From Auanema rhodensis (taxonomy: Eukaryota > Animalia > Nematoda), in assembly GCA_964057225.1 (NCBI GenBank), contig OZ059899.1:7192001-7256000 (forward strand): DNA of 64,000 nt. The letters run 5' to 3'. This document shows, in pieces, positions 224-42,290 of the stretch. Positions within the stretch are counted from its first letter, which is position 1. Every line of letters starts with the position of its first letter. The notes beneath the pieces were generated by a model. It was not told where the DNA came from and searched no databases. It saw nothing but the letters and a program-made list of their open reading frames with translations. The position numbers and the translations under genes were made by a program.

Positions 224-3200
224 CTGAAGAAATGAGGTGAATATAAGGCTAATCCTCTTATTTTTTTCTTCTATTCTACATTTTTTTAAATACATATATA
301 ATCATTTAACATTTGTTTTTACGAGAAAAAAATTTCCCAATCAAGAAATTGAAAATTGAAATGTCATATAGGATTATAAACATCATCTCACATCAGGAGG
401 AGGTAAATTAGGTAACTGTAATTTGCATAAAATCACTTCAAAGTTTCTTGATTGGTAATTTGATTGATTATTGTTATAGTAATTTTCTACTTCATACTGA
501 AAACACGTGTCGAGTGATAGCAAATGTTAAACATAACCTACCGCAGCACCAGGAGGGCTGACAAGTGGAGCAGCTACACCACGACCATTCATGGGAACGA
601 GCTAGAAGAAGACGATATCAATACGAGTATGAACATCAGTCATGAATATCTTTTCTCATTCTCGTAAAATAATTTCATTTTCTCTCCAACATTGAAATCA
701 TAGTTCCCATAAAAGTTCTCGGTACTAATTGGTTGATGGAATTCATATTTCCCATAAAATATTACAAGACAACATGAGAATTTTGAGACAATTTCAAAAA
801 TAATTTTTGCCCTACTATATCTTTTAACCAAATATAGTATATATAGTATATATAATATATAATATAACATACTTAATAACTGTACTTTATGTTGTAACAT
901 TCGCAATCATTTTTTTTACACTTTTGAGAAATAAAAAGAACTCGCAAATATCAATAAATTCGAGATTTTTCAAAATCAATCTCGATAATTTATTTCTCTA
1001 TATCACAATAATGAGCAAACATGTCAACGTGTTGATCGGCTAAATGATCAGAGTATAACTGATGAGTAAGCTATTCTGACATAATAGTCATCTAAGTCTG
1101 CTGATGTAAATGAGTTTGTCTGTTACTGAAATGAATCCTGCGGTGTTTTCGACAGGATCATAATCAAAGAAACTTTTTGACAGAAACTTCACTTTGTGCT
1201 TACAATTGGAAATATGGTATTTTAGTTCAAAACAACAAAAATAAAAAATTAGATGATAGTAAAGACAGCATTTACATCAATCAATTTCCTCCATAAACCT
1301 TGCACACTATATCTTTTAAAGTTGTTTTTAAAAATTTTATAAAGTATAAACTCTGAAGATAAGATATACCTGAGGTTGCTTCATCTTGTTTTGATTTGCA
1401 AGATTATTCAGTCGGGAATTTTTCCTTCGTCTTAATTGCTCATCATTAAGAATCCATTCTTTCTTCATGCCAACCTACAATGTTATTTTCAATTCAAATT
1501 TTCGAATGAATTTTGTATAAAACTTACAGCAAAACATTTCCGTAAACGACATTTTTGGCAGAAGCGACGGCTAACTGCATTAATTTCGCAATCTTCAGAA
1601 TATGGACATTTGAACTCCTGAAACATTTACGAAATCAATAAACTAAATTAGTATCGTTTTATGAAACATAAAAATGGCCATCAATTGAATAGTTTTCCAT
1701 ATATTTAAAAAATATGCAAACCGTTCAAATTAAAATCAAATTAAATGAAAAATTTGAATTTAGATTGTGTATCGCCGAAGACTTCTATGACCCTCGGGTA
1801 TTATTAAATCAATGAAAATGTTTCACAATTGAAATTCTTGATGAAAAAAACAAAAGTTCTCAACAACAAACTTCGGAGACGTCGACAAAAACAAAAAATA
1901 TAGAGAGAAACAGAGAAACTCATGATACTTTGACATCATCATGCTATTGGATATCGTACCTTCGGTCGCAATGCATTCCTTCGGAAGAAAGCTTTACAGG
2001 ATTCACATGTAATAACATTGAAGTTGTACCCCGTGGCATGATCGCCACAAACCCGACATGTTTTTTGACGACGTCGAGAGTCCTGTAAATCATTTTGTTT
2101 AGAAGAACATGATATATGAAAGAATAGTAGAAAAATTAAACAAAACAAATCTCACTTCACTGGAGTTTGGATCAATTGATGTTGCTTCTGGAGAACTACA
2201 ATTTTGAGCTACTCCCTCTTCAATTTTTGTTATTTGATTTGGATTATAGCCTGAAAACTAGAAAATAAATTTTGAATATTGTTAAGAGTATAGAGTTAGC
2301 AGCGTTTTCATTAAAAAAGTATGACCTCAAAATAAAAAAAGCGATTAAGAAGTTATACGAAAACGTGGGTTCAACAACCTCTAATATTTTTCGTGTTTTG
2401 ATGTGATATATAGAAAAAGAATATAAATAAGTTATAAAGTTTTGAGATTTTAGAATATTTTGTTTGTTGATTATGATTTGATGAAAGATTACTTTTACTG
2501 TTACATCGTAAATGCTATCAAGAATGTCTAATAAAATTCAAAAAAAATATAATTTTCTAACTTTTGCTTAAACGAGAGAAGAAGAGAACAGACAGGAATG
2601 TGCAAAATGAAGAATAGATTGACTATGTGAAATAAATTAAAATTACTTCTCAAGGATAATATATTCAGATGAAATATTGAAATGAAAAAATGAATCAATG
2701 AGTAGCAAAATCATTCATAATACAGATTGAGATAGGGATATAGAGAATATGCAATTCGTTATAAATGAAACATAAACAATAGAAATTCTAATTAGAAATC
2801 TTATATTTTTCAAAATAAGAAAAAATATGTTGGCTTAGCATTAGGTTAAACATATAGAGGGAGAGATAGAGATAGAGAGAGAGAGAGAAAATAATAATGT
2901 TGATGTTAATGAATTGAATTACACGCACCGTTCATAAGTTGACTGCCGAGTGATGGAGGAGAATGGATTACCGGATCATCCGGTGTGCTCATTTGCGGCT
3001 GAAAAAAGAAACAATTAGCAATTAAAGCTTAATCCATATTTATGGTTGTGGTTTCCGTTCTGTTTTTGCATTTTTTTTTTGTTTGAAATAGTCTTATTTT
3101 CATTACCGAGACTTGCAACCCACAGCCACCCCCACCAATTTTCTTCGGTTCTCGTTGAACCAACGTCTAGGCACTTGGCCATACTCTTCGCGTACCACTA

Positions 3201-6200
3201 TTTTATGCAATTTTAATATAGCTCTATATACCAAAGAAGATGTAAATGGAAGAGAACAGACGGAGAGAACGAGAGAACAAGACTTTGAGCATGTTAAAAG
3301 AACAATTTGTCACCCCCGAATGTACCATTTATCTATTTGAAACTAACCGAATATTCATGTTTTATTCTGCAGTCAATAAACCTAAACTCCTCGCTTTCTC
3401 TCATATTTTGCCTTCCTTCATTAATTTCTATTATCAGTAAGCAGTGGCACTGTAAGCCAATAAAAAACAGATATGTTGAAAGACAAAGAAAAGGAACGCA
3501 GAAAGAAACAAGCTGAGAATAACAGAAGGTATTTGCTAAAAAAAAAGTATTTGGACGACTATTTTGTTAGATGATTGTCAATGTGATTAAAACAAACAAT
3601 AAACTTCTTTAAGTACAAAAATATTTCAATACTTTACTCACTATATATGTAGAGTGAATATGACTAAATGTACTTCTCCTCATAATAATGTGAAGATCAT
3701 TTGAATGGTTCAAAAGAATAGATAGAAAATCATGATCATGTTGTGAAGGTAGAAAGAGCAGAGAAAAAAAAAGATTAAAAAAAAAGGAAAAAAAAACAGA
3801 AACATACATAAATGGAAATTTTGTAGACCTAGTGGCAGGCAAAGAGGAAGCGAAAGAGTGAAAAGACTGTGTAAGCAATAAGAGAGATGGGGACGAGACA
3901 CGAAGGGAAGAAGAGAGACGAAGATATGGAAGCAATTGGAATGTTTACCACTATGCGGTTTCTACTATTTTTGTCTTTAACTCTCGTTTCCCGCCTATTC
4001 ATTTCAGTATTCCATCACCGTTCTCTATTCCAACTATGTTCACATCTATTCCCATCGCCTTCTTGCCTTCTTTTCATTTCTGTGTCTTGGTCCAAATGAA
4101 TATGAGACCGTGGTCGTGAAGACGTTGTCGTCGACAAGAGTAGCTACAGAATGAAACATACTAAGTCATGAAAAGAACGAAAAGAGGCAAGAAGCAGAAG
4201 TAAAGAATCAGGGAGAGAGAAGAGAGAGAAAAAGAGAAAGATGGAGAGGAGAGAGAGAGGGAGGCAGAAAGAGAAAGAGAAAGAGAGAGGGTCAGATGAC
4301 AGCTACGCCACACACAGGCAAAACGAAAAGGAAAAACAACTTTTATTCAATGCAGAAGGGGAATGGCTGCGAAAATAACTGGAGAGTGATTGAGAGATAG
4401 GGATGAAGGTAGAGAGAAACAACTCATAGCAAATAAAGAACCTTTCACAGTCATTGAAACTTCTGATCTCATGTGTTCCTCTCAACCTTTAACTCGCTTC
4501 AAGCGATGCGTTATAGCATCCTACATAGATTCAAGCTCAATACCAAAATCACGATTGAGTAAATGACAAACCGATTGTAGAGTTCGAGCATTGATTGATT
4601 GTGCCTGACATACGGTTACGCAATCAGACGGATTGTACGGCTGGTTCCACGCATACTGGCTGCTCCACAACATGCCCCCGAGGCAATCGGAGAAACAGAA
4701 CAGATAGACGTTTCACAGCGTTAGATTGAATATAATGCCGCCTCTATTCCAGTAGACGTAATATATGCTAAGAAGGTATAATTCATGTTGATCAACTTTG
4801 AAAAAGCAAAAATATAATCAGAAAAATCGAGCAAAAACTTGATAAGTTAAGGAAAACAATACGAGAAGAAACAAGTTGTCTGCTATTCATGAGAAGAGCA
4901 ACAGCATATTTCAAGGAACCCGAAGAACTGGAAGATCTGCGAGTTGAAGAGCAGAAAAGGGAGGAGTAGTGTTGAGATGGCTATGCCGTCGGGATGAAAA
5001 AGACATGCAAGAATAAGAAAAAAGGAAGAACAGAGCAGCAGTCGTGGAGCGAGCGAACGAGAAGCGAGGGAGAACGTCCCAAAACCAAGCCGCTGCTGGC
5101 TACGAAAACAACAACAACACTACTAGGCAGAGGGTTCAGAGAGCAGACTTTTTTGTCTTTCATCCTCTCCCTCTCTCCATAGTTGTTTGGCAGCTTTTTT
5201 TCTCTCTTTAACCCTCTAGTTCTCACAAACATTCTCTCGCTAGTTCCCCACTCTCTCACTTTCCATGTGCCTCGAGTCGCAACACGCTCGCGGCACATCG
5301 TCAACGACGTTGTTCTGTTTCTCCACTTCTCTGCTCTGCCCTCCATTTTTCCATCAGTACCGTTCGTTGTTGTCGTTCCATCTTACTTTCTTTTTCATTC
5401 TCTCCTCTATTTTCACTCTACCTCATCTGATCTATTTTTTATTCTGTTGTTTCTTTTCTCCCTTTTCACATGCTATTTGCCAGTGTCAGTTCCTTTCTTT
5501 CTGTTCTCTTTTCTACATTGCAACATAGATGAAAAGAGTTCGACAGATAGTGAGAGAAAAAAAGAAAAAAAAGAGAACGATGAAAAAGAAGGAGGAACCC
5601 ACATGTTTCACCAAAAACAGAAATGCTATTCAACTAGGCTGTTTTTTTCTTTGTCACTGTTGCTTACTACAACCATTTCGTTAATGGAGCCTGCTGAAGG
5701 TTCTGTTCAACATGTTTCAAGGACTTCAGAATTTTTCAATTTTGCAATATTTAAGTTTGAGAGCATGTATAGCTTTATGAGATTGGTTCCACCATTTCAT
5801 ATTTCGTTAATCTTTAGAGGAATGGCAATCAGATAGAATATTAGATTTATCAATCGACTTCATCTACATTCCAACGACAGACAAAATATAAATAGTATTG
5901 ATATTGTACTCCAATTAATGGAACAATCTTAATCCATTTTCTCAATTAACCAATCAATTTATGAATATAGTATATAAATATATTATTTTGACCGTTATCG
6001 GTATCTTCGTTTTTCCATTTGGACAAAAAATTGAATCTAAATTGTCGAATGGAACAGAGTACACAACGTTCTGATTATCGAACTTTCAAACAGCTGATGA
6101 TGATGCTTGAGCTTTCACATTCAATTCCGCTTCAACTCTTCAAGATTTACAAAACGCAGTTTTAACACTCACGTGATTCTACATTTTCATTCTTCTTCTT

Positions 6201-9200
6201 TTCTTTCTTTGGTAGGCAATTTATAATATATTTTGAATAATTTGCTTATATTTAACTAGGTAAGAAAAGAAAAAATATTTCTATATATCATGTGAGTATA
6301 AAAATATGTTCTATATGATATTAATTAAATTTGAATGATATTATACCGGCAAATAAACTAAATCATCAGTCTAATAATCACCCTTCAGTCTTCAATCTTA
6401 CCTTCCCATAGAACTTGTTTAGCATGCTCCAACTGAGATAGTTCTGTGTTGAAAGCAGATTATTAATATCCACCATATTACGAAAAATATTTCGATGTGG
6501 CCAGACAGAGGAAGATGATGATGAAGTGTGAATTGAGTTTGTTCAAGGAAAGAACAAAGAAGAATTTGTGTCTGGCTCTTACACACTAACGCTTCGACGG
6601 CAGATACTCAGATCATTTGGAGCACCTTCAAGTAATCAAAGACTATGATAAACGCAATTTAAAAAAAGAAAGAGAGACAGAGAGATAAATATTGAAATAA
6701 GAATAAATAAAGTACATAATATAAAATTAAAGATTCTAACAAGTTAAGGAGAAATAGCAAAAAGCAAAATGCCACTCACTGCTATTAGAATTAGGTTAAA
6801 ACTGAATTAAAACAAAGATGTGAAATGTTCTTGTGATCAAGTTGAAAATGGTAAAGGTCGAAGAACTCGACATTAAAATCAAAATGTAACTTATCGTTTA
6901 CGCGGAGAAGAAACATGCTAACAAACGCTGGCGACAGTTCGCTAGGTTTCAAAATCGGCATTCAAGAGCAGGTTTCACGTAAGAATGAAAGCGTTCGAAA
7001 TAGAAAGTTCATGTAATTATGGATTGTTTGGGAGAGAGTAAGAGAAAAACCAAAAAAGGGGATGCAATTAAGGTAAATTCTTGAAAACATGGCAGAGTAA
7101 ACTATTTTAAGAACTTTAGCTTTCTTTAAGAAACTTGAGATGAAAATTAGTCAACTACAGCTGAATAACTATATTGTAATAGAAATATTACGTAAAGAAC
7201 ACAAATCATAGAATTACAGATGCAGAATAGGAGAAGCTGGTGAAGCTTTCGATTTATTAGGTTAGATAATCTGCTAACTATATGCTGATTGTTGTCTCTA
7301 TTATCAATTACTGGTAACGATGCGGAATTGAGACAAGAAAAAATCAAGTTAGTTAATGAAAAAAAGATTTAAACTATTAAGGTTACGATGCGAAATAATA
7401 GAATAAGATAGATATAAACATATAAACAAAATAAATTGAGAGAGAGAGAGAGAGTGAGAGAGAGAGAGAGAAGATGAAGAAGAACATAAAGGTACAAAAG
7501 GATTAATAGTTCAGAAAAGTTTTGTTTCAGTCCGTAAACGACAGTGCAAATAACTAAGTCTAGACATTTCAAAGAGATGCAGGTGTACCTACATACATGC
7601 ATCATTCCTAATTTGAACACTCAGCTCATCTCAACTGCTAAGTCGAATCGAAATTTCGCTTGTAATGATTTCACGGACATTTGATTCGTACTAGGATGGT
7701 TAATGGAAACGATCGGCATTGAAGGAATACAAGCTGTTTTATGGCTCAGCATAGTCAAGACATCATCATCATCTTGGCACAGCTTATCAGCTATCATATC
7801 ATATTGCAATCAATTCATTTCAATAGAAGCATCGAATAATATTTACGATTAACAAGGACAAACCATCGGGGAGAAAAAAAAGAGAAAAAAGACAAAAAAA
7901 AGAAAAGATTTGTTGTTGATAGAATATTAGATTGTTCAAAAATCAAATGAGCAGTTAAATCTGTTTCGAAAAAAAAATCTGATGCTGTATATGATCATAG
8001 CTAAAGCAGTGAAACCGAAATTATTTTGTGAAAAATCGGCAATAAGGGCAGCAAACGGACAAACGAACATCAGCAGCCAATATACGTATACACGCACACA
8101 ACCCATCAGCCATTATAGACTGGAGTGCTGATGGTCGAAAAAACTTGCAGTTAGCTTGGCCAGGGGGGGGGGGGTGAGTTGCTATACGAGTTTCGCCTAT
8201 TCCTTCTCTCTCTCACTCACTCTCTCTCTTTCTCTCTCTCTCAATCTCTCTTTATATATATACAAATGTATATAATATATAAATTAAAGATAATTCTTTT
8301 AACTTATCAATAACACCCTTTGAATCATCATTGTAAAACATTTAAATGATCGAATTGTTAATAAACAGTTTGGATGATTACCTATTTTCATCACCGTTCG
8401 GCTTTATATTAACTCTAATAACGTTATTAAAAAAAGCTGACTAGATACATAAATGTTAAAGTCTACTTTGAAACAAAAATCAATCAGATATTTGGTTGGT
8501 TCGATCATATTGAGATTGAGGTGAGCTCAATGATCTCATAGCGGGGAGTACTGGCGATGATGTTCATATTTTGACTTCAACCCATTTATAAACTTCCATT
8601 TGTGAAGTGAGGTTCCCTTTCAATCTACTCTACTCATTATCAGCATGTTTTCTACTGCTTCATCACTATCAGTATTAACAGCCTAAAAGCTTTTACCAAC
8701 CTGTGACATAAAGACGAACATGTTGTGTTTAGTGCGTTTTTCAGAATAGAATAGATACACGGAATGCGCTTCACTTACTTACTCACCAGTACATACACAT
8801 ACACACGGAACAGCAGATTACGAGGCTCCTCCTATTTCTGATCAAATTATGATCAAAGAGTTTCTCTTAAGCACAATGCCGGAGACGGAATATGAATAGA
8901 TAACCGTGTGTATTCAGACGTAAAGTTTTGTATGTGTGAGTGTGCGTGTAGAATTGAGATAAATGAGTGCAGCTGAAGGCAGAGTTTCAGACGAATCGAG
9001 TTTTCGCGAACACTTGTTCAGATGCAGAGCTTTCAAAACCAAGAAGATGCGAATACGAAGTGACTTATGAAATACAAAGAGCCAACATGGGCGAGGAAAT
9101 AGTTGTCCACACCTGAGAAAGTTGGGCTTTAATGCCAATTAAGAGAAATAGAGAGGTGACAGAAGGAGAGCGAATATATACAGCTACTTTGTCAGTGAAA

Positions 9201-9843: not shown

Positions 9844-9895
<52 letters not shown>

Positions 9896-15800: not shown

Positions 15801-18800
15801 AGATCATTTCTTTCTATTCCTATAACATATTTCACGGAATAACTGAAAGGTCAGATTCTACTGATCAGCAAGCTATAAAGAAGCACGTGATCACATGGTA
15901 TAACTAAACATTTAAGAAATGTTGATTTGTCTGACCTAGAAGTATGAAAACCAGAAAATACAATACCTAAGAATTTGTATTCAAATTGCTCAATACCTCA
16001 TATAAGGTAAAGTTTGAGAAGGTGAATAATTGAAAAGTTCAAAAGCGCAAAGAGAAACGACGATCTATAAAGGAAAGAAAGCGTTTAGCAATTAAGATAT
16101 TTCAGATCAATCCAAGTGCAGAAATACAAAAATACCTCGATATCATTGATGTAAAAGTTATTAGCTTTACTATTATATTTATATGTAATATACATGCAGC
16201 ATATGTATAATTGTCAATTGCTACAAGGGATACGTTTTTTTTTTTCGTTTTGTTTCTCTTTTATGCTCTTTATGAGTTCAACTCATACGATGATTGGACC
16301 TGGACTGGTATATTTCAACAGCATTCAGTCCCTTCAGTCTCCAACACAACCCCAGAGCTACCCCATCGATGGAAGGGGAGAGCTCAACAACGAAAAACAA
16401 AAGTACAAAAAAAGTACAAATACCCATTGTCTCAACAGAGATGCTACTGCGCCTGTTTTAGAGAGGAAGGAGGATGAATTCAGAGAGAAAAAGAAAAAAG
16501 AAGAGAAAGAGATACAAAATAAAAAGTAGAGTGTCTACAATACAGTAACCAAGAGAAAAAAACGAGAACACAGAGTGAAACAGAGTCATCTATAGTTGCA
16601 AAACAAAAGATAATAAAAAAATCGGAGAGTGTTAGAGAAAAGAGGAATGAAAAACTTGGGAGAGGCTTTCATTTTTAATCACATTGCTTGGTCCCTGCTC
16701 GTTAGAAGGTTATGTCAAGCAACGTAAAAAAATTTAAAAATCTTTATCTGGGGATAACGATTACTTATACAAAAGGAAAGATAAATGATCAGCTATCTAT
16801 ATACCATATACGTGCATATGAAACAGTAGATGCAACAGGGTTCATCAGCATCCTAGAGACAGGACGTCAGAGTACACAGATGACATGACGCCGGATGGCG
16901 AAATGTTGAAAACAACGATGGAAGCTGTAGGGCCAAAAAAACAGCTGACACGGACATCAGACGATGTCAACGACATTCTGCTTGTGTATGTATCAATGTA
17001 GTGAAATGATACCTTCGTATTCGTGAATATATGATGAATGAAGGGGGGGGGGGAGAGAGAGAAACGGCTGTGGATCGGGGGAATATTAAGAGGTTAATAG
17101 AAAAGCTCGAATAAATAGAAGAAAAAAAATAAGGAATATATATATATTATTGTCTCTATTTTATTTCAATGTGTTACATGAAAACGTGTCCTCAAAATAT
17201 GCTAATAATATAGTTTTAAATTCATATTTGTATGCGGTAAATATGCCTTGTATATGACACTATGTAAGCATTGTATATATATATTGCACGTTTGCTTGAC
17301 TACACAAAGTTCGTTCGACTAGTCTTCTGATGCTCGATTTAGGATCAAAACAATCTTGGTAGCATCAATGAGATCAGTACTAGTTGTCCATCCATTCCGC
17401 AAGGGCAGCAGGCCCGCATGCACTTGCGGCGGAGCAGTCCGAAAGGTTCAGGAGGTTCGAGCTGGTTGCAAGGCTCACCATGCTTTCCGCAGAGTACATT
17501 CTAACGAGCAAGCTATTTCGAACGAACGATGAACGTGGTGATGTGCGATGAATACATGGAAAATTAAAAAAAAAGAAAATTAGAAGAATAAATAAAGCTC
17601 TGGTTAACATAAATAATGGTCGAGAGTATATCTACGCCATTCATGACAAAGTCCAGTATACAAGGGATAACGACGAAAACAGTGCGTAAGATTATGGTGA
17701 TCCGCATATCTATAGATGGCGAGGATGAAAAAAAAGATGTGATCAACTAAATTGTTTAAAGCGGCTCTTCGACGTGCTCCGTCGTTGCATAGTCGTTGTC
17801 AACTAGTTCTAGTGTGAGTTTCAAAAACACTGACGATGGGAGAAACGAAGAAGACGATGGCAAAGAAGAAGCACTTTTCTGGAGCGGAAAACATAATAGA
17901 AAAAGAAGTAAAAGCCGCAGAGCAGGAAGAGACGGGAGACCCAAGTCAGGACCAATTCCCCACATGAAGCAGGAGAGGAGAAATAGACGAACATGCATGA
18001 CAACAAAAAGAACGAAATAGGAAAAAAAGAAAAAAAGGGTAGTAGATACAGAGAAAGAGCAAGAGAGGGCCAGAGATGGAAAGAAAGAGAAAAGAGAGCG
18101 AGCAGTAGTTTTCCCCCGCTTGGCTCGTTCTGTTTTTGTCTTCGAACATAGAGAGGGATTGAAAGAGCCGAGAACAAAATTGATATAAGGGACGAAACAA
18201 ACTATGCGAAAAAATGATAATAACGATTATCAGTTTCAGGTTTTTTTAGTTATACAATGCAATCATAGTTGAAAGTAGTACATAAGCACTTGACAAGAAG
18301 ACATTTTTAAAATTTTGGTTTATATACAAGTGATGGGAATATAATTGTATGTTCATATGTATTAATATGGATAAAGCTAAACGATCAACTTTATAAATCT
18401 CTTAATAGATTGTTATATATGTGATTGATTGAATATACATAAAATGTTTTTTCAAGTAAAAACAAAAATACTTGTGATGAACTGTATGCTTGAACGAATA
18501 TAGTTAATCTGAGATAAGTAGAATAGAATACAGAAGTTCGGCAACATTTTAAATGCGGACAGCATTATTGACTACATATGCAAAAGCATGTAAAAGTGCC
18601 ACAAACTAATTTAAAAACAAAATAAATTGAATTACTGTTTCAAAATTATAAAATAAGTATTGTTTTTTATAGATGTTTGAATTTGATATGCTGCTTTTGT
18701 TTCAAGCATACAAGTATTTCGTCGCAATTTGACAAGTTTTCTTAATGTTTCGTCAATTACAGTATACTGACAGATGAACAGTAATACAGAAATATAAAAT

Positions 18801-22701: not shown

Positions 22702-22744
<43 letters not shown>

Positions 22745-25700: not shown

Positions 25701-28700
25701 TTGACTAATCGTGAAATGCTCTAGCAATAATGCAGATGAAGTACGTAGAACAATCGTTAGTCCGGTGCACTACAATCGCAAAAAACAAAACGAAAGGAAT
25801 CAATGGTATGTGTTTAGATTGTGTCTGGAACAGAAGAAAAGCTAGCAAATCAAACATAAAAGCAAGGCGTCCAGTAAGCACATCGAACGAAGTAAAGTTG
25901 CCGTTTTAATGATAACAAGTTGATAATATTTGAATATGAGAAGTGAACAGGGAGACGCTGAATACATACCAGTTATCATTAAATTTAAATAAAAGGTAGC
26001 GTTATTAACAAATATAATAGTTACATTTCAATAATATCATATTCCTCAAAACGTCAAACATCTTAAGAACATGATTACGGAAGACTAGCAACCTTCAAAA
26101 TCATGATAAGCATATTATCTAGCTTTACGTGAATTGGCAGATAGCAAGGCGTTCGAAGCATAGGTACTGGGTTGATACTGGTCAACTTATATATTTGTCG
26201 GTTTTATATTTAACTGATACGATCATAAAAACCTCCGGCCAAATTACAAAAAAAAAGACAAAGAATTTTTTTTCTTGTGCAAAATTTTATATTCAAATGG
26301 CTGAGAGATACCTTTAAATTGTATAGATATTTGTATACTTCCTATTTGTTATTATTGACAATTTTCAGTAGTATTTTCGCATAGAAATGAACTAAATGTG
26401 GATAAAAAGAGAGGGCATTCGCCTTCGGGTTTTGTGTACAAATAGGCCTCGTGTAGTCAGCGCGGTACATGACACTTGTCAACAACCGATAAACAATTCG
26501 AGTTCATTTTAACGAGCTTCCCAACTGCCTCCTGTCGTTCTAAGGGATAACAAAAATCCTCATTGAAAAACTAGAGACAAAACAAGGTCACAAATGGATT
26601 GATTCAAAACCCTTGCAAGATCGAAAATGCACATTTGATGATTCTTTCGTTCGATCATGATAATGAAACATGGATTAACCTAGAGAAACTCGTAAACAGA
26701 GAATGATTTAACATTCAATAACATCATATGCGTTACTTTCAAGTATAAAAAACTAGCTATAATCTTTCCTTGACAATTCGAATCAAGATCATGTAACTAT
26801 GGATATCATCATTATAGATTGTTCACCTTGTTTCAAATCAACAGACATGACAGTAAAATGCTTTTTTCTCTACCACGTATACGTTTTCCTTACTGAGGAC
26901 GACACCGACGTTGACGAAGCACGACAACGACATAGCCACCGTCCATAGCAGGCCGACACCGCTCCAAATGGACCGGTTTGTCCTCTTCTATGCGAATGGT
27001 TAACGTAATAGATGTGTTCCATCTCAAGCACACAACATATATGGCCTTGAAATGGTTCAGTCCAATGAAGGTAGGGTATGACAATCAGGACTTCAGGAAC
27101 TGCTAACTGCAGCGCCTCGAGGTATCGTAGCAAGACCACGAAAATGACTATGCGAATTGTATATACATAGACAACGCATTAGACATTTTTGTATCTTTCC
27201 GTCTCTTTCTTTTTTCCTCTCTTTCCACAGCAGATAGCATTCAATGGCAAATCCCAAAGTATTGCTTTTCGGTTGAGACGTAGAAAGCGTCTATTCACTT
27301 GTAATTCGTTTTTCTAGGACGTTCTTCAACGGAATACCGTACTAACAACTTAATATATACTGAACGATTCCGAGAGTGAAAATAATAAAAGAAGATATGG
27401 AAGAGAAAATGCAAGAACACTAGCGTACTGTGACAGTAACATATTGGCATAGTAAAGAGAAGACAGTAATCACAGAACTAAATGACTAAATGACTAACAA
27501 TGGACATGGTGTCAGAGTCATGCAGGAACAAAAGAGAAAAGAAAAAGATAATGAAAACACAAAAAAAAAGAACATCAAGAGTGAAAAAAACTGAATGTTT
27601 CCTTTTTTTTTACTTCAAAGTTCAAAAAAGTTCAAAATCTAAGGAAATCGGAATCGTAAATTCCATATATCCCACATATTTCAACACTATCTATCGTATT
27701 TGAAATTAGATTTCGTAAGTAGCGAACAAAACTATAATCTTCAGAAATATATTATTTCTCAATTATATATTAAGAAAATTGATTTGTTAAATTCTCAAAT
27801 AGTACAATAAGATCTTATTAGGTGATAGATGTTTTCAGTACTTCTGAACCGTTTAAAAAGATACGAACTGGATAAGAGAAATCAGTATATACGAAGAGCA
27901 TAGCACGATCAATATATAAAACATAATTTCATAAAGTATTATAATAAATATTGACTGATTGTCATTTATATAAAAATAAAAATAAAAATATATAAATATA
28001 TCTATATATATATAATCTCTCTCTCTATATATATATATATTATGAATGAGCAGCATTTTCACCTGCATGTTTTCAATAGGAAACAAAATTATAAGCTGTC
28101 AATGATATAAACTGAATATAATGTAAGCTAGCCAGATGGCGTATTAATGTATATACCAATAAAACGAGATATATGCAAAGATTGCGGCAATGAAGAAACT
28201 TTTTTTTTTCATCCTGCTTCCGATAGTATAGATCTACTTACAATCTACAGATCCATTGTTACTAACGTGAGGTTTGTTCAAAAATCATAAATTTATCTAG
28301 ACATCCTTTCATTGAAATTAAGTACTTAGCGTTGCCTTTCCTTCTCCACTCCATTAACTGGTGATGCTAAATGACATCGTTCATCATTCCTCGCAACCCC
28401 CCTCCATCGGTCCGGTTGGCTTCCGCCAATAGCAACCTTATGGAAACTTCCCTCATTATTCATTTTTTGATGTCTACGAATTTTCATTTATATTGAAAAC
28501 AAAGCAATTTTGTAAGACGAAATCAGTATTTTTTGACATAATTTCGCACTCAGAAAGCCCTCAAGTTTCAATCTATTTGATCAGCTAAGGATTCCAGATT
28601 AGGCTTAGATTAGGCTAGAGCAAATAAAAAAAATGTTATAAATCTCTCCTGATGTTATTATCTGGAATTTCACCACAACGTATGAACACGATTATATCGA

Positions 28701-31700
28701 GTAGTAATTCAGAGAACAGAAACGCATGGTAGTTACTGAACAACGATAGAGTCGATAGAGAGGTCAAGCAAGCCCTGGGTTTCGTCGCAACCGGGTCGAC
28801 GACCGAACGTCGATTATGCCCTCGACAAAACTGTCGCGATTGTAGTGGTAACGAAAACTGTTGTATAGCTTTGCGAACTTCTGAAGAGGTATAAGTGATT
28901 GAAGTTTAAATGAGGCAAGCAAGGCTGATGTTTAAGAGATATCACATAAATTGTATCTCGGGAGAGAGTTGAAGAAGTTAGGAAAATAGAGAAACCAGAC
29001 AGACTCAATAAAATACGAACGCCACTCCTACGTCGGGTTTTGCTCTGCATTTCGCAGTATTATCAATGGCAGAGAGAACGAACGATAGTTTCGGCATTCT
29101 GGATTTTTTTTTCTCTCGAACTGTTCGTTTGTAAGCAAAGGTTCGAGCTTACTAAGCGGACATTCGAGAATAGTTCAAAAACCGAAAATCAATATTGAGC
29201 ATTTCTGCAGCTAAGAAATAAGTTTAGATTTCTAAAGTTGAAAACTCATCACCTTACTCGAAGAGTTTTTTTACATTTAATTGCCGTAATTCAACGACAT
29301 TGTACCAAAAATATCAAGATCGAATAAATAGTCAGCAAAACATCAAATTATGATTGAAAATTCGATAACCATACTTACCAAAAATGCCTGCAGCAGCATT
29401 TCCAGAGACATAACTGGAATAGCTGTTGCTGCTCTGTCTTCGTTTTACTGAAAAACAGGTACTGTCTACGTATGCTACAGAACTGAAGCTATACGTACAG
29501 TCAGGATAATAATGCTGGAATCAGTTTGAATGACTTTTGCCAGCAGAACAGAAGACTCACATAGTTATGTTCAACGTTTCAAAATAGCCAATAAAATTAG
29601 TTCACCTCAGGCTTATTCAGAAAAGCTTCAAATTCAGGAGAAAAATATCTAATAGAAAACGTAGATATAGAGAATATAAGAGCGCCTGTACGCGGTGTAG
29701 TCTTGTAGAACACCACTGCCTCTGGCGGTCTGTTTACGTTTATGTCTGTGTTCACTGTTCTTTTTCTCTTAAACTTTCCCCCCTGCGAGTTCAGTTTTAT
29801 ATATGTATATGGTAAAGAAGCGACCTTGAGAAGGAACGCATAGTCAGCGATGGGCTGCAGCATAGTAGAGATGAACAGCTAGCCATCTTATGGGGCACAT
29901 ACCCAAAGCGCCTCCAAGGACATTGCAGGAGGAAAACGAGACGATAACTACGTATGTCGATTTAAGTTACTTCAGGGACAAGTCCTATTGGCTCAAGCAG
30001 AGACATGTATTTTTCGGATAGACGTAGATACAACATAAAGCAGTTAGAAGGATTAAAAGAAAAGTGGGGAACCGATCGTTGCCAGGCTACTCGGAAATTG
30101 ATATAATGAATAGTGCAATTAAGGTGAGCTAAAAAAAGATTTTATGAATTTTGCTGTGGGTCAAAATTGCAAGTATGAGAAGTTGGAAAATATGAAGTCG
30201 GTGAGAGATAAGAGACTGCTACTGGTCAGAGCAGCAAAAATTCAAAAAAGAAGTGAATACTATAGAGCTACACATTTTCAGTGGTTACGTCCACGTTTCA
30301 TACAAAAATGTATTGAATAGACCGTCGACATAATATGGCTCACGTTGAATTGTAAAATTTTCATAGAAAAAGGAAAAAGAGGCAAGCTGTTGGATAATAC
30401 TAAAAAGACAAAAGATGGGTTGAGACAGCTGAGAGCACCATTCCTGTCGGACAAAGACTTTGAACCATGCCCGACTAGAATGACAACGGACGCATATGTG
30501 AACGAAAAAGGCAAGTAAATTTTGCTGTCTCTCTCTATCTGTACTGTCATGCTGTCAAGTATGGAGAACTTCCAAAAAAAAAAATGCAACACTCATTTAC
30601 AAAGATATAAAGCCAAAATTAGAAATCTGTCAGTTAGAATGAAAAATATTAGAAATTGTAAATTGAAAAAAAGGAATATGAAATAGAAATGATAAAATAT
30701 ATATATTAGAATATACAAAGATGGAAGCTATATTTACAAAACAAAGAAAAAATATGAGCGTTAGTCGTATTAAGATATTTGCTTGAACTCGTAGATATAT
30801 TGAATTTTTTTTATTACCGATAACTATACTCAATTACGAAAAATTCGGACACGAATTTACGCATGTTGTTGTCGAGCGATACTTTAAAACTACAAACACA
30901 CTTTCGAAAAGCCCCCGTGGAATTTATCTTTTCACCACATTACATGTCCCAAAACGAGTTAAGCTATGTAACTCCAAAAACAGAAACTTCAACCGATTAC
31001 CCCCGAAAAATGTAAGGAGAGCGCACCTCTTCGACTTCGTCCTCGTCGCTAACATTCGTGGGAGGACTTAAGGTTCCATTGATTTCTTTGCTCTTTCCTG
31101 CTTTTCCACTGATCTGAAATATATAGTTGTTATATCATAGAGATTAAATAACCATCTTTTATAAATTACTTCGAGAAAATTCATTAAGATTACTACAAAA
31201 AAGTTCTAATTTTGAAAGCGTTGAAGTCTGACGTATGCTTCATATTTAATATTTTTTCAATTATTAATTTTTAGCAAAACGAAATAGCATGTACTTAAGA
31301 TATGGTTATATATATATAAAACATTATTTCACTCCATGATGACTTTGGTAATTATTCAATTATATTGTGAATGCTTTTTGAATTTCTCATACAATGAAGT
31401 GAAATATCATGAAACTAGAAAAAGATGAATGCAATACTATTGTCCTCTAGTTGATGTTTGCAAAAAATTGATTTTTTTTGTTAGCGAACAGACAACCGAA
31501 CATCGTTCTTGCGATGCTTCACTATATCCCATACCCTCTCTCTCTTTTTTTTCTTTCCTTACTCTCTTTCTTTTTCGTCATCTCTTTCATTCTCATTTCC
31601 TCTCCTTTGTAATTCTTTAAAATAAACAGCCTTAAGCAAAGACATATAAGTAGAAAAGCTCAACATATTTTTTATAAATTAAAATATTATTGCTGAATAT

Positions 31701-32072: not shown

Positions 32073-32125
<53 letters not shown>

Positions 32126-35100: not shown

Positions 35101-38100
35101 CGTACTTCGGGCAAATGAAACCTTAAAAAATCAGTAAAACGGATTAGCAGACTTAAATAGTACGCATGTAATCGCATCTTCAAGAGTATCCTTATTTGAT
35201 TGAATGATAAAACTTGCAACATTGTCGAAATAATTCCGAGCATAGGAATAGAAAAACATAAATAACACAAAACTACTTGTAATATTTGCATATTGATGAA
35301 AAAAGCTTAGCAGTTATAGCAGAAGCCATAACTTCTCAGTACACACCGATAGCCTCATGGCATTAAATAAAGTTTAGATGATGTGAAATATATTCCTTAA
35401 TTTGATCGAAATCCACACATCTCGAAATTTTAGTGCATATCCAGGAGATGATATTAAAAGGCTACTACTTGAAGGGTTGTAAGGGTCAGTAGCTAGAGAG
35501 CACAACGGCCTAGCCAAAGATTAGAAAAGGAAAGACATCGGCGGGGTAGTAGAGAGCGTGAGTTAGAAGAATGATAATAGAAAGAACATGAGAGAAAAAG
35601 AGCGTAAGGAAGAAATGGAGATTAAAAAGCTATCTTCAATAAATAGGAATGTAGAAATTTCAGAAGGAGACAAAAAAATATGAAAAAACTGAAGAGCACA
35701 AGAGCACAACAAACTAGTCGAGGGGCTATATAAACTATTTCAGTACTATTAATTTGTTTTACAAACCCTCGAAAAGCCGTGAAGTACAACAATCAATCAA
35801 ATGTCAAGTTTGATAATTCAAAAGATATAAGCATGAAGGTCATACCATATACGTGTTCATAAGAGTTATTATAAAGAAAATATTCAAGATATTTTCAATA
35901 GAAAATGCAAAAAAAAAGTACAAAAAAATTAGCTGATAAAACCACTATGACAACGTGTTCATATGACTAATTTAGCTCTTTATGCAAACAGAAATAGACC
36001 CCAGCAACAACGCACTTTGCAATTCTGAACAAAATGACCTTGTGGTTAAGCTTTATTTTTGTCAATGATATAAAAAATAATATCAAACGATAAGCTTGCA
36101 GAGGTTAGAATACCTTTACTGTGAGATTGGTGTAATACGCAACATAAAGGTGTTATCAGGAAACAACCTAAACCAGTGGAATTGAGTATCGCTTTAGATA
36201 TTGTGAGAACATTATCAGTGCAATCAACTCAAAATTCGAAAAAGTTTAAACGATATATTCTATGGTTTGATATGGCTCAGTAAAGTGAATCGAATAAATC
36301 AATTCTGGCGCCTTTAGGAGAAGAATCAGTTTGCATTTAAAAAATTGAAAGCGTAGAGATTGAGCACATGCTCAAAACCAATTTTCGCAGCGCTGACTGA
36401 GGATCAAATGTCTGTACAAAGTAAAGGCGGAATACTCATGGTTAACTTCAGAAATGTCTCTGAATCAATTGAATAATCACTAATACGCATCTACAAACAG
36501 TTTCAATGGAAATCAATAGCATTATAAATCATAATATTTTAAAAGAAAATAAATGCAGTGCAGTCAATAAATGATCGTTACTCGTAAACCGAAAAATATT
36601 GAGCATTTTGCAACATTTTTTAATCATAAAAAAGCTCATAAAAGCAGAAAAAGAGGAAAACATAAGTGATAGCTCTTTGATTTCTTTCTATCAAAAAATG
36701 TATATGCGAAAATATCGATTTTTACGGACCAAAGCGTTCCGAAAATTAAAGATAATGAAGTGAAGAACAGAATGACTAGACAACAAAATATTTTTGAGAT
36801 CTTGAAATAGAAATAATAGAAAAAGATGATTAGAAATCATAACTATATAAATAAAATAGCCGGAATAATTGAACTTGCTTGGTGAATAGTATAAATCATG
36901 TAATTCAAATACGAATAAAATGGAATACCAGATCTTGCATTTGCAAACAAAGCGAAAGAGAGATAGAGAAAAGCATGTGAGAACAAGATGAACAATAGAA
37001 AACTTATGATAAAGCATTTAAAAATGAGATAACTGAAAGGAATTGAGGTAGTATAAATCTACAAACAAATATGAATTTGTAGTCTTCATAGAAAACAATT
37101 ATATAAGCTATACCAACAACCAGAGGAGTCGAATACACTATTCTTTTAAGAATAACGATGAGTAGCGTATGTCTTGATCATTTCTGACCTAGAATCCGTC
37201 AACGTTACAAGACACCGTGAAGATCGCCGTGGAAGGACAGGTCAAAATTGGTGTCAACGGTTCAGGAATAGATCGAAACCGCAAGTGAGGCTGGAGCTTG
37301 GCTCGTAAGCAATGGTAACCTTAAAATATTACCAAAATTTTGGATAAATTAATAATTGAAATATTCAAATTTATCCTAATAAAAACGCTAGATAAAATGT
37401 AGGAGCCCATTTTTGTTCAATGAAGTAAGTCCGTAATTCAGTTTTGTGCTCATATATCTCTTTATAAATGCCAGTTGGCTATCCTAAGTCTGATTACGAT
37501 TTATGATCCATCTAGCTGAGAATTGTCATTTATCTGCTCTCCACAGCCAAAATCACATTCACAGTATACCAAGGAATTTACATTATCCCCCCCCCTTTCT
37601 CGTTGACAAATTTTGAAAAGCGCCATAGACGAAATCCCAACACTGATTAAAATGCTAATCTTTTTTTTTTCTCGGTAAAATAATTCTATCGTAACTTGAA
37701 AATAAAAATCATCGACCAATTTGTTTGGAAGCGTTCATTGACATCTCATTTTCAAGAGAAAAAAGAAATTCAGGTAAAACGAAGATGATGAATTTAGAGT
37801 TGAACGACAGAGATTAAAACACAGTAAGATGAACATGATAATTAACGCTCAATGCGACTTATGAATTCTTATTTTATACAGAAAAAAAAGAGAGAGAGAG
37901 AGATCGAAACACAGAGATTATAGAATAAATCCAAATATGATTGAAATTAATAGAAAATTATCATACCCGACTTTTAAGCAGCAATAGCATTTGTTGTAAT
38001 TCTTTTATTTCTGTAATATTGTTGCGACCAATTCAGTCGGTGTTACAATTCAAAATGAAGCCATTTTTGCATTATTAGCGCGTTCTACGTGAACCCCACG

Positions 38101-39310
38101 CAAATTCAAGCATGAACATAATATGTTAATCATGTCATGGAATGCCATAATTGAGCTTCAATGGCATATTACGATTAAGATGAGTGATTTAACGATAGTA
38201 ATATATTTCAGGTTCATTAAAATACCAAAGTTGGTTAGGAAAGGCTTAAAGCCGGATTTTCATTCATCACCACACTCTCTGCCTACTTAATCTGATATCT
38301 GAATGCAGGTGGAAACTGCAGTTATTCGAGATAAGCTACCATAATACTAATCACATGTGCCAGCTGCAGGTGCTCACGCTTATACGTTGCTTTACCTTTT
38401 CGATAACTAGCATTCAACATGACCAAGCTATGAGCAACGCGGAGTATTGAAATATGAAGAAATAATAGGAAAGAAAAAGACAAGAAACTTCGCATAAATG
38501 TAGTTACACCACAATTATGATTATGACCACTAACTTCGCTTTTCAGTGAGCAGTTTTCAGAAAAGGAAGAGCTGAATCAGTGAATTAAATTAGAAGAAAA
38601 TTATAATTATAGTCACAAACTTGATTGCTTCAGAAAAAAGTTGCAGAACAAGGAAGAAATGAATAAAACAACTACAATCTTCACGAATACCACTAGCACA
38701 ACAAGAACGAAACGTACTTCGAGCAAACAGATAGATATAGAAGGTATCAGAGAAGTGTATTCAGAAACCAACAAGACGGTGAAAACAAAATTCTTACCTT
38801 AGATATAAAATCATGTACGGTTTCAGATGGTTTTAAAAGCCAACTTCCATTTTCGGAGAGAAGAGAATGTAGAAATAGTTGTTGAATATGAGCAGGATCA
38901 GGATAGTTTTTTGGAGCTGCAGAAGTGGCTAAATCTTCAATGTTGCGAAACATTGAAATCTTCTTGCTTGGAGAATCTTTGTTCATAGATAAGTTGATGC
39001 CATCAGTCGCATCAGACATGGGCAAAGAAGTCTGCTGGGTGATCTGGATCATGGGTGGTTCTTCACGTTCAAGACCTCGAACACATGGTGAATGGATCAT
39101 ATCAGGTTCCTTTTTCCGTTTCCGTCTTGAAGAGCCCACAGAACTCGGCCTATATATTGGAGTCGAAGTCAATGATGCTATCGATGTTGAGGTAGATGAG
39201 AGTTCAGCTAGCCGAGCTAGTAACTTGTCGACATCAAACCCAGTTCCTTTCGATGGCAAACCGCAATTCATATAGTTTATACTGCCTCTGCTGTTGGCGC
39301 CTGAAGACAT
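131..39310 (-). CDS. daf-12: Nuclear hormone receptor DAF-12, 5' part of a multi-exon gene (LBD exons lie beyond the left window edge)
   Basis: Spliced minus-strand exons give ...[15 protein letters not shown]|[18 protein letters not shown]...|[41 protein letters not shown]|[30 protein letters not shown]|[24 protein letters not shown]...[19 protein letters not shown]. This is near-identical to the C. elegans DAF-12 DBD (CESCKA P-box) and its flanks as I recall them. All junctions are GT-AG and phase-compatible. Confidence 0.95.
542..601 (-). CDS. daf-12: daf-12 hinge exon ([20 protein letters not shown])
   Basis: TTCTTCTAG acceptor, GTAGGT donor, 60 nt, phase 0/0; resembles C. elegans PQLISPPGAQ. 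Confidence 0.85.
1370..1474 (-). CDS. daf-12: daf-12 exon, DBD C-terminal extension ([24 protein letters not shown]...)
   Basis: TTGTAG acceptor, CAG|GTATAT donor, 105 nt; conserved GM-KKEWIL motif. Confidence 0.95.
1528..1617 (-). CDS. daf-12: daf-12 exon, second zinc finger
   Basis: [30 protein letters not shown]; TTTCAG acceptor, GTAAGT donor. Confidence 0.97.
1960..2082 (-). CDS. daf-12: daf-12 exon, first zinc finger
   Basis: [41 protein letters not shown]; TTTACAG acceptor, AAG|GTACGA donor. Confidence 0.97.
2156..2250 (-). CDS. daf-12: daf-12 exon N-terminal to the DBD ([32 protein letters not shown])
   Basis: TTTTCAG acceptor, GTGAGA donor, phase 1/0; aligns by eye to C. elegans GYHGSGVKLEESSGACGSPD. 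Confidence 0.9.
2929..2998 (-). CDS. daf-12: daf-12 first common exon ([23 protein letters not shown]), phase-0 acceptor
   Basis: TTTTTTCAG acceptor at 2999, G|GTGCGT donor; near-identical to C. elegans [18 protein letters not shown]. Confidence 0.93.
4614..4673 (-). CDS. Candidate alternative first exon of daf-12 ([20 protein letters not shown])
   Basis: GC-rich island, ATG at 4673, 20 codons, ACC|GTATGT phase-0 donor, 1.6 kb above the common exon. Confidence 0.4.
8163..8174. repeat. G12 homopolymer (others: G11 17043-17053, G10 44398-44407, C11 54097-54107)
   Basis: Read directly. Confidence 0.9.
9847..9894. repeat. (AG)24 microsatellite
   Basis: Perfect dinucleotide run read directly. 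Confidence 0.95.
19609..20020 (-). CDS. Candidate alternative 5' exon of daf-12 (Ser/Thr/Ala-rich, ~137 codons)
   Basis: Long open frame of higher GC in an AT-rich intron; TATTCAG acceptor at 20021, TAT|GTAAGT phase-0 donor. The start codon is unresolved. Confidence 0.5.
22704..22760. repeat. Interrupted (AT)n microsatellite
   Basis: Read directly. Confidence 0.95.
29379..29447 (-). CDS. Candidate alternative first exon of daf-12 ([11 protein letters not shown])
   Basis: TTTTTCAG acceptor at 29448, 36-nt leader, ATG at 29411, 11 codons, TTG|GTAAGT phase-0 donor. Confidence 0.5.
31027..31113 (-). CDS. daf-12: daf-12 upstream internal exon ([29 protein letters not shown]), not in the ORF track
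   Basis: ATTTCAG acceptor, GAG|GTGCGC donor, 87 nt open, phase 0/0. [11 protein letters not shown] resembles the LTPPNSDDD that precedes PQMSTP in C. elegans DAF-12. Confidence 0.8.
32077..32113. repeat. (TA)n microsatellite
   Basis: Read directly. Confidence 0.95.
38798..39310 (-). CDS. daf-12: Probable daf-12 first coding exon (171 aa Ser/Pro-rich N-terminus with basic RRKRKK cluster)
   Basis: ATG-initiated 513-nt frame ending AAG|GTAAGA (phase 0); TTTTCTCAG acceptor at 39407 upstream. No other downstream partner gene is visible on this strand, and the phase matches the 31113 exon. Confidence 0.7.
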
Positions 39311-42290
39311 GACGGGTCACCCGTAGAGGGGAGTGTGGCAGATAGACAGGCAGAGCAAGAGGCGGGAATGGGAGAGAAGTTTATCAGCTCAAGAAGAAGC
39401 ACCAATCTGAGAAAAGTGCTAATCGATAGTTTGAAATAAGTAGTAATAGACGTAGCAAGTAGTTACAAGTTGAATAAGACGCAAAAATGTGTTCAAGATG
39501 AAACTTGTAGTTGGTTGAAGAGACGACGCACACCGCAAATGAATCAGCTACTGGAGGAAAGAAGGTGACGAATCAAAAACAGTGGCTGGAAGAGAAGATG
39601 CTGAACAAATGGGAGGAGCGAAAACCATAATTATCATGTATACGCAGGAATGGATTTGAAGTTAACGGATATATAGCGATTGAAAAGCCAAACTGAGCAC
39701 CAGCATTCCTAAGCTCTGATAAACCGCTTGGTTGCTAAAAACGCCAGATTCATCAAAAGAAACTGAAATGCTAGTAGGCTTTACAAACTTGTACCCGAGC
39801 AATTACGCTGAGTATATTTCTGATAACGTGGTTGCCGTGCGATTGATTGTCATGAAAAGAGCAGAAGTCGAAAAGCCGTTAAATGAACAACCAAATCTAA
39901 GAAGCATGCTTAACAACATGATAGTTGAAGAAATAGCAACTAGCTGAATATTTTTTTCAATCTTCTTGAAAATATATTTAGAAACATTTGAACTTTCATT
40001 CGATCGGAATAAAGGGATGTCACTTTGCATACTCTCATAGCAGTTGAGAGTAAGGTGTACAAAAAGAAAGAGGTAGATCCTCAATATATATGATTCGAAT
40101 AAAAAAAAGAACTGATTTCCCGGCAATTTTTGAAATACCTGCAGACACTCTATATCGGCAATCAGCGATAAGAATGTTGGTTATGCTAGGAGAAATCTTA
40201 GTTCAAATAAGTTTGTTTCAAGCTAGCCTAGATAATATAGAGATAAGGAAAAGTATGCAAAAAATAAAAAAATATATAAAACAGAAAGAAAATAATAGAT
40301 TTTTAAAATAATTTTACATTATAACTTTGATACAGAATAAGCTGTCTCTTGCTAAAATGATTAGAATATTAATCAGGTTTACGTTAGATAACTAATTTAA
40401 TTTTATGAAGGAAAACGGCAACCGCGTTATTTTATTAAAATACTCACGCTTTTACTAGTTTCGAAAAATTGTAAAGATTGAATATAAATGGAACAAAATG
40501 AATTCATAAGGAAACCTCATTAGATCACTAAGGGTCAGCCTACATTGCTTTGATCATAAGGGGCGGATCTCATGAGCTTAACAAGCACTCGTCCGCCCAT
40601 AGAGAAAGAGAAAGAGAAAGGCGGATACGGCATATCGCTTTCTAAATATCTTCACCCAACCACCATATGCAGACAAAGTAGCATAAGAATTTAGATATTT
40701 GAATGAATCCACACTTTTTTTCAAATATGTTTCAAGGATCAGCACAGCAAAGGTTAGCTGAAAGCTCCATAGCTATTAAATTAGTTCAATTTTGGAGGGT
40801 AAAAGATTTAGTGGGAAACCGCTTATCGACGTCGTGTGACCATTAATACATGCATCTCATTCTATTTAAAGGATAGTGGCCAAGGGACTGACTTGCTTTA
40901 CACCTCCTTTTCTCTTACACCCGTATCCAGTGCTTATAACCGCTAAAGTTTAAGGCAGAGTGAAATGTCTGAGTATAAGAGGACAAAGTCATGGTTATAT
41001 TTCTTAAATGTCGAAGACAAATCTGACCAAAAGTTAAGCAGCTGTTGAACATGCGTGAGCATGATCTCCAAATTAGTCAAATTCCTAATGAGATAACGAC
41101 AAAAATCTTCAATCGCGTGTATCCCATTTCAACAAATTGCAGAATGAGCATCTGTAGGAGAGAAGCATTAAGATAACGGATGAGTAAGCAGCAGCTTAGC
41201 AACATCAAATGAAAAATTAATAAATAATCAGATTACCAAAAAATAGGCAAGTTAAGCTTATGGTTTCAACTTAATGGGTTATTGGAAAACAAACAGAAAT
41301 TTCATCTGCATTTTCAGTTCAATCCGGAAACACTATGACCAGCGCGGTAATCCAAAAAGGATTTCTAAACAGTGGAAGAAAGAAGACAAAACCAAAGAGG
41401 ATCTGCCAACGTCATTAATAATTCAAGCATTCCAATGTCGTTCATTGACGCTGTTGGTCTATAATTGGTAAACCGGCCCGGAAAACTAGAGACACAAGGG
41501 AAAAGAATTTAAGAACAGAGTATAGAGTATGAATAGCGTGTGAATAGAGATAGAAACTAACATTTAAAATTTGATAATGAAAAGGTAAGGTGTGTAATAG
41601 AAAAAGGAAATATGCAGATTGGAATTTTCTTATATTTGCAGTAAGCATGTTTAAAGGAGAGACAATAAAGCATGATTATTAACTAACAAGATTCATAATT
41701 CCAAAGTAATGATACCAGTATACATACTAATTAGTGTGCAACTTCAAGAGCAGTAACATTCAAGCAAGCAGCGGATCAGACTATTAATAAGCATATTTGG
41801 ATATGACTGATGCTTTCAAGCTCAAATTGCTTTGTTCACAAAGCCAATTAAATATTAAGATGTCAAGTTCATAGTAATATTCCGATATTCATAATCAAAT
41901 AGACACATATAGCCATATAATAACTAGATATAAGCGAGAAAATGTATATTTATAACCTTTCATATATTGAACAAGGATGTTAAAATCGAGTTGAGCTAGA
42001 ATTTAGCTTTGATGATAAGCTTGCATAAGAACTTTTTTAGTTGTATAAACCATGCTTAGAAAGAGATCAAAATTAACATTGACATCAATAAGAATATATA
42101 CGTAATTTTCTAAACGAATACAGAATACGGCATATCTGCAAGGTACAAACGATTACCATTGACAGAGCAGCTGACGGAGAAAAGTGAGATGAAACGTAAC
42201 GATAAAGATAAAGTGCGTAATAATAAATGAGATTAGCAAAGCAAAAAAACGAAAAAAAAATATATATGGACTAGACTGAGGGGCACCATG

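Follow-up and report, generated by a model that had tools for sequence, protein, structure and literature searches.

Two putative alternative first exons upstream of an ordinary, very long intron in a daf-12 orthologue of Auanema rhodensis

We analysed a stretch of 64,000 nucleotides (nt) from Auanema rhodensis (contig OZ059899.1, positions 7,192,001 to 7,256,000; hereafter the window), whose minus strand, from 1 to 39,400, is on sequence evidence the 5' half of an orthologue of the receptor gene daf-12. A preliminary description of this DNA had read the 28-kb intron ahead of the exon at 2998 as an array in which seven coding first exons are interchangeable, each splicing to that common exon and supplying a different AF-1 domain. 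We found that in spliced RNA contigs from three runs acceptor 2998 is joined to a single upstream exon, exon 2, and that the seven frames look like a selection made by hand from many chance frames, whose excess over expectation is modest at most. The account that we favour, and that we take as a whole to be probable, combines an ordinary long intron 2, chance reading frames and regulatory islands within it, and two alternative first exons that would lie upstream of exon 2.

The RNA evidence consists of assembled contigs from three small runs of a single study (X1, X2 and X3), mapped to positions 1401-7400, which hold acceptor 2998, the zinc-finger exons and three of the candidates (3642, 4614 and 6402). 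That the three runs holding the gene are RNA follows from the spliced state of their contigs: each run gave one spliced contig (depths 45, 29 and 32), with GT-AG joints identical in all three, and the chain reads exon 2, 2998-2929, 2250-2156, 2082-1960, 1617-1528 and 1474-1370. The link to exon 2 comes from the loose ends that the contigs carry past 2998, the first 30 letters of which are, in every run, the reverse complement of the 3' end of exon 2, so that the junction from 31027 to 2998 is shown in three runs. No other partner of 2998 occurs in the spliced contigs. Since the mRNA runs from exon 2 to exon 3, the 28-kb interval between them is one ordinary, very long intron. The exon chain of the 5' half of the gene is as follows.

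38798 to 39310, minus strand: coding part of exon 1, 171 codons (MSSGANSRG...DFISK), phase-0 donor gtaaga; from its open frame.
31027 to 31113, minus strand: exon 2, 87 nt, phase 0 at both ends, donor gtgcgc; from the RNA joint.
2999 to 31026, minus strand: intron 2, 28,028 nt, with 13 islands of elevated guanine-plus-cytosine (GC) content; from the RNA joint 31027 to 2998.
2929 to 2998, minus strand: exon 3 (the 'common exon'), 70 nt, phase-0 acceptor; from the GT-AG rule on RNA joints.
2156 to 2250, minus strand: exon 4, 95 nt; from RNA joints.
1960 to 2082, minus strand: exon 5, first zinc finger of the DNA-binding domain; from RNA joints and Pfam.
1528 to 1617, minus strand: exon 6, second zinc finger; from RNA joints and Pfam.
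1370 to 1474, minus strand: exon 7, C-terminal extension of the DNA-binding domain and start of the hinge; from RNA contigs.

The preliminary description was right about exon 3 itself, whose phase-0 acceptor we recovered and whose extent, 2998-2929, is now given by RNA joints. The acceptor reads ttttttcag followed by CCG CAA ATG in phase 0, the third codon being an in-frame ATG (2992-2990); a non-coding first exon or a spliced leader placed on 2998 could therefore still give a receptor, one starting MSTPDD. The long path 39310 to 31113 to 2998, also proposed before, is observed in its second step, whereas the join of 39310-38798 to 31113 is a deduction to which we return below.

With regard to the identity of the gene, exons 5 and 6 encode two C4 zinc fingers (Pfam zf-C4, PF00105, E-values 6.5e-13 and 1.1e-6, respectively), and exon 5 contains the 13-residue DAF-12 recognition helix, which matches the string quoted as identical between the C. 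elegans and D. immitis DAF-12 proteins (PMC7343802). The assignment to DAF-12 is based on the zinc fingers, the recognition helix and colinearity, and not on a tree separating NHR-8 and NHR-48. The ligand-binding domain (Hormone_recep), with which DAF-12 binds dafachronic acids, is not encoded within the window; in Auanema sp. JU1783 the colinear gene has it as a weak match to PF00104.

Turning to the candidates, all seven ATG-to-GT frames are present where they had been placed, with phase-0 donors, and the acceptor-like string reported 36 nt upstream of the ATG at 29411 was found there as tttttcag. Their individual properties are these.

29379 to 29411, minus strand: 11 codons, donor gtaagt; not in a GC island; codon log-likelihood ratio -0.34 per codon; unsupported.
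26894 to 27022, minus strand: 43 codons (MEHIYY...SVSSS), donor gtaagg; no Pfam match; -0.22 per codon; unsupported.
19609 to 20020, minus strand: Ser-rich open frame of 137 codons, donor gtaagt; no usable start or phase.
17479 to 17499, minus strand: MYSAESM, 7 codons, donor gtgagc; indistinguishable from chance; unsupported.
6402 to 6425, minus strand: MLNKFYGK, donor gtaaga; no contig and no joint; unused in the RNA contigs.
4614 to 4673, minus strand: MLWSSQ...DCVT, donor gtatgt; low-depth RNA, unspliced through the donor.
3642 to 3683, minus strand: 14 codons, donor gtgagt; no contig or joint; -0.45 per codon; unused in the RNA contigs.

In the three runs no contig joint within 1401-7400 departs from donors 3642, 4614 or 6402, and no alternative loose end appears at 2998, as use of 17479, 19609, 26894 or 29379 would give. 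Counting the junctions that land on 2998, a check that had been proposed for the array, thus returned 31027 and no other donor among the contigs, from which rare forms could escape. The only RNA found on a candidate is a 208-nt contig of X3, at a depth of 3.8, which lies contiguous and unspliced on 4572-4769 and crosses the donor of 4614-4673. It could be pre-mRNA, an enhancer RNA or a small unannotated transcript; an Rfam search at E<=1 over 4300-5000 gave no match for it, and the transcribed segment folds no better than its shuffles.

The largest of the candidate blocks, described before as a long Ser-rich frame, is indeed open over 137 codons, but it lacks a usable start and phase. Its first in-frame ATG is at 19671, which leaves 21 codons, and none of the known upstream donors matches the phase of the ttattcag acceptor at 20021, where phase-0 entry reads CGCRI and then a stop. 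The frame has no Pfam match, and a protein word search returned no homologue of it. As a separate observation, strings of the LxxLL type occur in exon 1 (LHSLL, 38864-38850; LHSLI in JU1783), in the candidate at 29411 (LEMLL, 29403-29389) and in the 137-codon frame (LLQLL, around 19750), conservation having been compared for the exon-1 motif only.

How many such frames are to be expected was estimated with a second-order Markov model of the sense (minus) strand of intron 2, by counting ATG-started phase-0 frames that end at a donor. For donors of the class any GT there are 451 frames, against an expectation of 397 +/- 28; for GTR donors there are 178, against 156 +/- 14. In the class GTRAG, frames are found at 15 of 34 donors, where the model expects 6.7 +/- 2.3; the antisense strand of the intron gives 13 of 61. 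This GTRAG excess is modest, because the local base rate of an ATG before a stop, 29%, would by itself yield frames at about 10 of the 34 strong donors. The excess tracks the CT-rich, stop-poor character of the sense strand, and open frames of at least 100 codons number 16 on the minus strand of the intron versus 3 on the plus strand.

Neither the quality of the donors nor codon usage singles out the candidates. The authentic donors of this daf-12 orthologue are weak and varied (gtgcgc, gtgcgt, gtacga, gtatat, gtatga), so that a good-looking donor is no evidence for a candidate. In a codon log-likelihood test, 14 of 16 real exons scored positive and no candidate exceeded 0.03 per codon, a test that is weak given its small training set and the score of exon 1 itself, +0.04 per codon.

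The diversity that the preliminary description sought within intron 2 probably exists in a minimal form, although in different exons and with exon 2, not exon 3, as the hub. The comparison that suggests this is with Auanema sp. JU1783 (GCA_943334845.2, contig CALQYR020007501.1; locus L001), the closest available relative. By blastn over the upstream region and intron 1, the two loci are colinear for an Elongin-A/Med26-like gene, the counterpart of exon 1, the mini-exon described below, exon 2 and more than 15 non-coding blocks, and intron 1 measures 9.5 kb in JU1783 versus 7.7 kb in the window. The colinearity fits a rhabditid nematode related to Auanema, one that need not be a parasite. Exon 2 is conserved in 26 of 29 residues (L001 20000-20083). 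The two features of intron 1 on which the argument turns are the following.

37967 to 37990, minus strand: alternative first mini-exon of 8 codons, ATG CTA TTG CTG CTT AAA AGT CGG (MLLLLKSR), phase-0 donor gtatga.
38275 to 38374, strand not assigned: conserved non-coding block, about 89% identical to JU1783 (blastn, alignment), with two CACCTGCA E-box-like motifs; matched by tblastx in all frames.

Along its full length, exon 1 shares 41% identity with P0001 of JU1783, and the similarity ends exactly at the donor. P0001 is the single true relative of exon 1 among 1.84 billion representative proteins; a word search with exon 1 alone returned nothing, and one with the alignment of exon 1 and P0001 returned only P0001. 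The open frame that reads through exon 1 in the window has no record of its own. Because conservation reaches the phase-0 donor and does not go beyond it, exon 1 appears to be spliced, most simply to exon 2. In JU1783 the counterpart is annotated differently, as a separate product of 201 amino acids (P0001, L001 10001-10606; 'unnamed protein product') whose frame continues past the donor into the intron. The receptor gene of that species is annotated with 800 amino acids, zf-C4 and Hormone_recep, in a model that starts at the mini-exon, and this model probably lacks the long N-terminal isoform.

The mini-exon was the only hit of a screen of intron 1 for combinations of ATG, frame and donor conserved between the two species. 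Its counterpart (L001 11421-11444; ATG CTG CTG CTG CTG AAG ACT CGG, MLLLLKTR, donor gtacga) lies inside the exon, beginning at L001 11364, with which the annotated coding sequence of the 800-residue receptor gene opens. The five nucleotide differences between window and L001 comprise four synonymous changes and one Ser/Thr replacement, with ATG, frame and GT kept. Exon 1 and the mini-exon each end in a phase-0 donor, compatible with the phase-0 acceptor of exon 2. An invariant 20-mer, TAATCTCTGTGTTTCGATCT, stands at 37901-37920, about 50 nt into the intron past the mini-exon donor.

As for which of the two first exons is used, the loose 5' ends of the contigs are ragged, with lengths of 210, 215 and 218 nt, which correspond to exon 2 and a further 125-133 nt; a genuine transcript end would look like this. 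Exon-1 words of 31 nt occur in the three RNA runs with shares of 0.93, 0.74 and 0.64; coverage in X2 and X3 is thus no more than 64-74%, even though the main contig there is deep. From the ragged 5' ends, the fork of X1 and X3 at 1370 and the patchy exon-1 words in X2 and X3, we judge that the mini-exon form is quite probably the major transcript in the three sampled runs and exon 1 the minor one. The fork concerns the 3' side of the contigs: those of X1 and X3 end precisely at 1370, the exon 7 donor, and the 4343-nt contig of X2 goes on, extending 3.7 kb past the mapped part of the window. The shared stop suggests an assembly fork, which would point to alternatively spliced hinge sequence immediately downstream of the DNA-binding domain.

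The GC-rich islands call for an explanation of their own, and intron 1 provides a guide. Where it aligns with JU1783, in blocks of 75-89% identity, its GC content is 0.42, versus 0.31 for the remainder, and tblastx matches these blocks in all six frames; since matches occur in every frame, the GC-rich islands of intron 1 are conserved non-coding DNA. By analogy, the 13 islands of intron 2 are probably conserved cis-regulatory DNA of the same kind. The earlier statement that the candidate blocks lie mostly in GC-elevated islands holds for four of the seven and fails for the other three. Searches of intron 2 detected no long coding open reading frame and no dispersed repeat, the repeats being TA and GA/CT low-complexity runs only; the islands are therefore neither transposons nor duplicated cassettes. 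Rfam, applied to the whole window at gathering score, gave no family. Situated some 300 nt upstream of the mini-exon, the block at 38275-38374 could act as an internal promoter or as an enhancer. A GTGAGC at 32362 was considered as a second conserved donor and rejected, conservation being stronger downstream of it than upstream.

Conserved non-coding blocks are also seen upstream of exon 1, at 42692-42434 (85% identity) and 41515-40511 (68% over 1 kb). A further block of 100 nt, at 46383-46284, is 90% identical, has a CTGATTGGC CCAAT-like motif and is separated by about 0.8 kb from the Elongin-A-like gene upstream of it; folding of 46270-46400, which includes the block, gave no RNA structure signal above shuffles. 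The gene in question, with an Elongin-A/Med26 domain, occupies 46847-48964 on the minus strand and is colinear with L001 539-2260 at 67% DNA identity.

Put together, these data are consistent with a scheme in which the seven ATG-to-GT frames would be the chance yield of a CT-rich, stop-poor sense strand, and the GC islands of intron 2 would be cis-regulatory DNA of the same sort as those of intron 1 and of the upstream region. The receptor N-terminus would owe its diversity to two first exons ahead of exon 2, each with a phase-0 donor: a long N-terminus from the 171-codon exon 1, and a short one from the 8-codon mini-exon at 37990-37967, which an internal promoter near the conserved block 38374-38275 may drive.

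Several observations weigh against this scheme, and they are best considered along with the explanations that compete with it. Contigs lose rare or stage-specific variants and display only the dominant form; the candidates at 17479, 19609, 26894 and 29379 fall outside the mapped 6-kb stretch; frames at strong GTRAG donors run at about twice the Markov expectation; and the 208-nt contig of X3 amounts to transcription of at least one island (GC island 3999-5498). The regulatory reading of the intron-2 islands is an analogy from intron 1, L001 ending 520 nt into intron 2. Use of the mini-exon, in turn, is something that we infer, as the 30 loose-end letters displayed are all within exon 2, and its putative 5' untranslated region has two short upstream open reading frames (38030-38066). 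Some of these points would suit the original proposal, according to which several of the seven frames are low-abundance coding first exons, specific to a stage or tissue, with promoters of their own, spliced to 2998 and encoding different AF-1 domains. Its phase-0 donors and phase-0 acceptor are truly there, GTRAG frames exceed the Markov value (15 versus 6.7), four of the seven candidates sit within GC islands, one island is transcribed, and daf-12 of Strongyloides stercoralis does have several promoters and three N-termini (PMC3493385). Set against this, none of the three RNA runs has such a junction and the contig on 4614-4673 is unspliced at the donor; equivalent chance frames number in the hundreds and codon usage is of the non-coding type; the largest block is without a start, a compatible phase or a homologue; and like islands in intron 1 are conserved without a frame. 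The array of seven exons is thus unsupported rather than refuted, given that L001 reaches 520 nt into intron 2 and that contigs lose rare variants, and we regard it as improbable. We give slightly less credit still to the narrower idea that one island, for instance 19609-20020 or 29379-29411, is a first exon that would be used solely in a stage which the three runs do not include, dauer-fated larvae for example. In three-sexed nematodes like Auanema, passage through dauer goes with hermaphrodite fate, and if such an exon did exist, an isoform switch at the DAF-12 N-terminus could act in the decision between sexual morphs.

It is also conceivable, if unlikely, that intron 2 holds promoters with non-coding first exons, or that a spliced leader is placed on 2998, with translation starting at the exon 3 ATG (MSTPDD) to give an N-terminally short receptor, the open frames then being irrelevant. 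The strong acceptor ttttttcag with the in-frame ATG at 2992-2990 would permit this, the island at 4572-4769 is transcribed at a low level, and in S. stercoralis seven transcripts give three proteins, so several 5' exons there are non-coding variants. Yet no contig of the three runs ends at 2998 or joins it differently, and the transcribed piece is unspliced and at a depth of 3.8, as for pre-mRNA or enhancer RNA. The remaining alternative concerns the two first exons. Exon 1 might, less probably, be the sole one, the contigs breaking in it by accident, and the mini-exon might be a conserved non-coding block mispredicted as a start in JU1783. The flanks of the mini-exon are conserved too, as the invariant 20-mer at 37920-37901 illustrates; leucine codons favour synonymous change, two upstream open reading frames precede the mini-exon ATG, and exon-1 words are found in the RNA runs. 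What makes us doubt this alternative is that all three runs, at depths of 29-45, have contigs with ragged 5' ends and exon 1 is patchy in X2 and X3, that ATG, frame and GT are kept in both species whereas the upstream frame is not, and that a gene predictor would presumably be unlikely to call an 8.5-kb first intron without intron evidence. We therefore retain two alternative first exons ahead of exon 2 as the reading that the observations support best.

The outcome of this work is mainly a corrected annotation, comprising the exon chain, a 28-kb, presumably regulatory intron and a conserved alternative first exon of eight codons, the last of which suggests a short and a long N-terminus made from two promoters. 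This should be useful for the design of daf-12 reporters or knock-ins in Auanema-like species; it opens no new question.

Among known systems, the likeness invoked at the outset was with the insect receptors EcR and E75, whose A/B (AF-1) domains differ through alternative promoters and first exons joined to common exons. These belong to another receptor subfamily and their isoforms are experimentally established, so that the resemblance is one of principle only. Closer parallels are found within nematodes; earlier papers on S. stercoralis and C. elegans describe daf-12 genes whose several promoters give different N-termini (PMC3493385, PMC3656731). In S. stercoralis, daf-12 (Ss-daf-12a-g; Stoltzfus et al. 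2012) has several promoters, seven transcripts and three N-termini by RNA-seq (PMC3493385), whereas the window yields a single directly observed chain and a deduced maximum of two N-termini, and its intron, at 28 kb, is far longer. C. elegans has the same receptor, with an identical recognition helix (PMC7343802) and multiple isoforms, namely, several DAF-12A isoforms and a B isoform without the DNA-binding domain (Antebi et al. 2000 and Snow & Larsen 2000, as cited in PMC3656731). DAF-12B comes from further downstream in the gene, unlike the two first exons proposed here.

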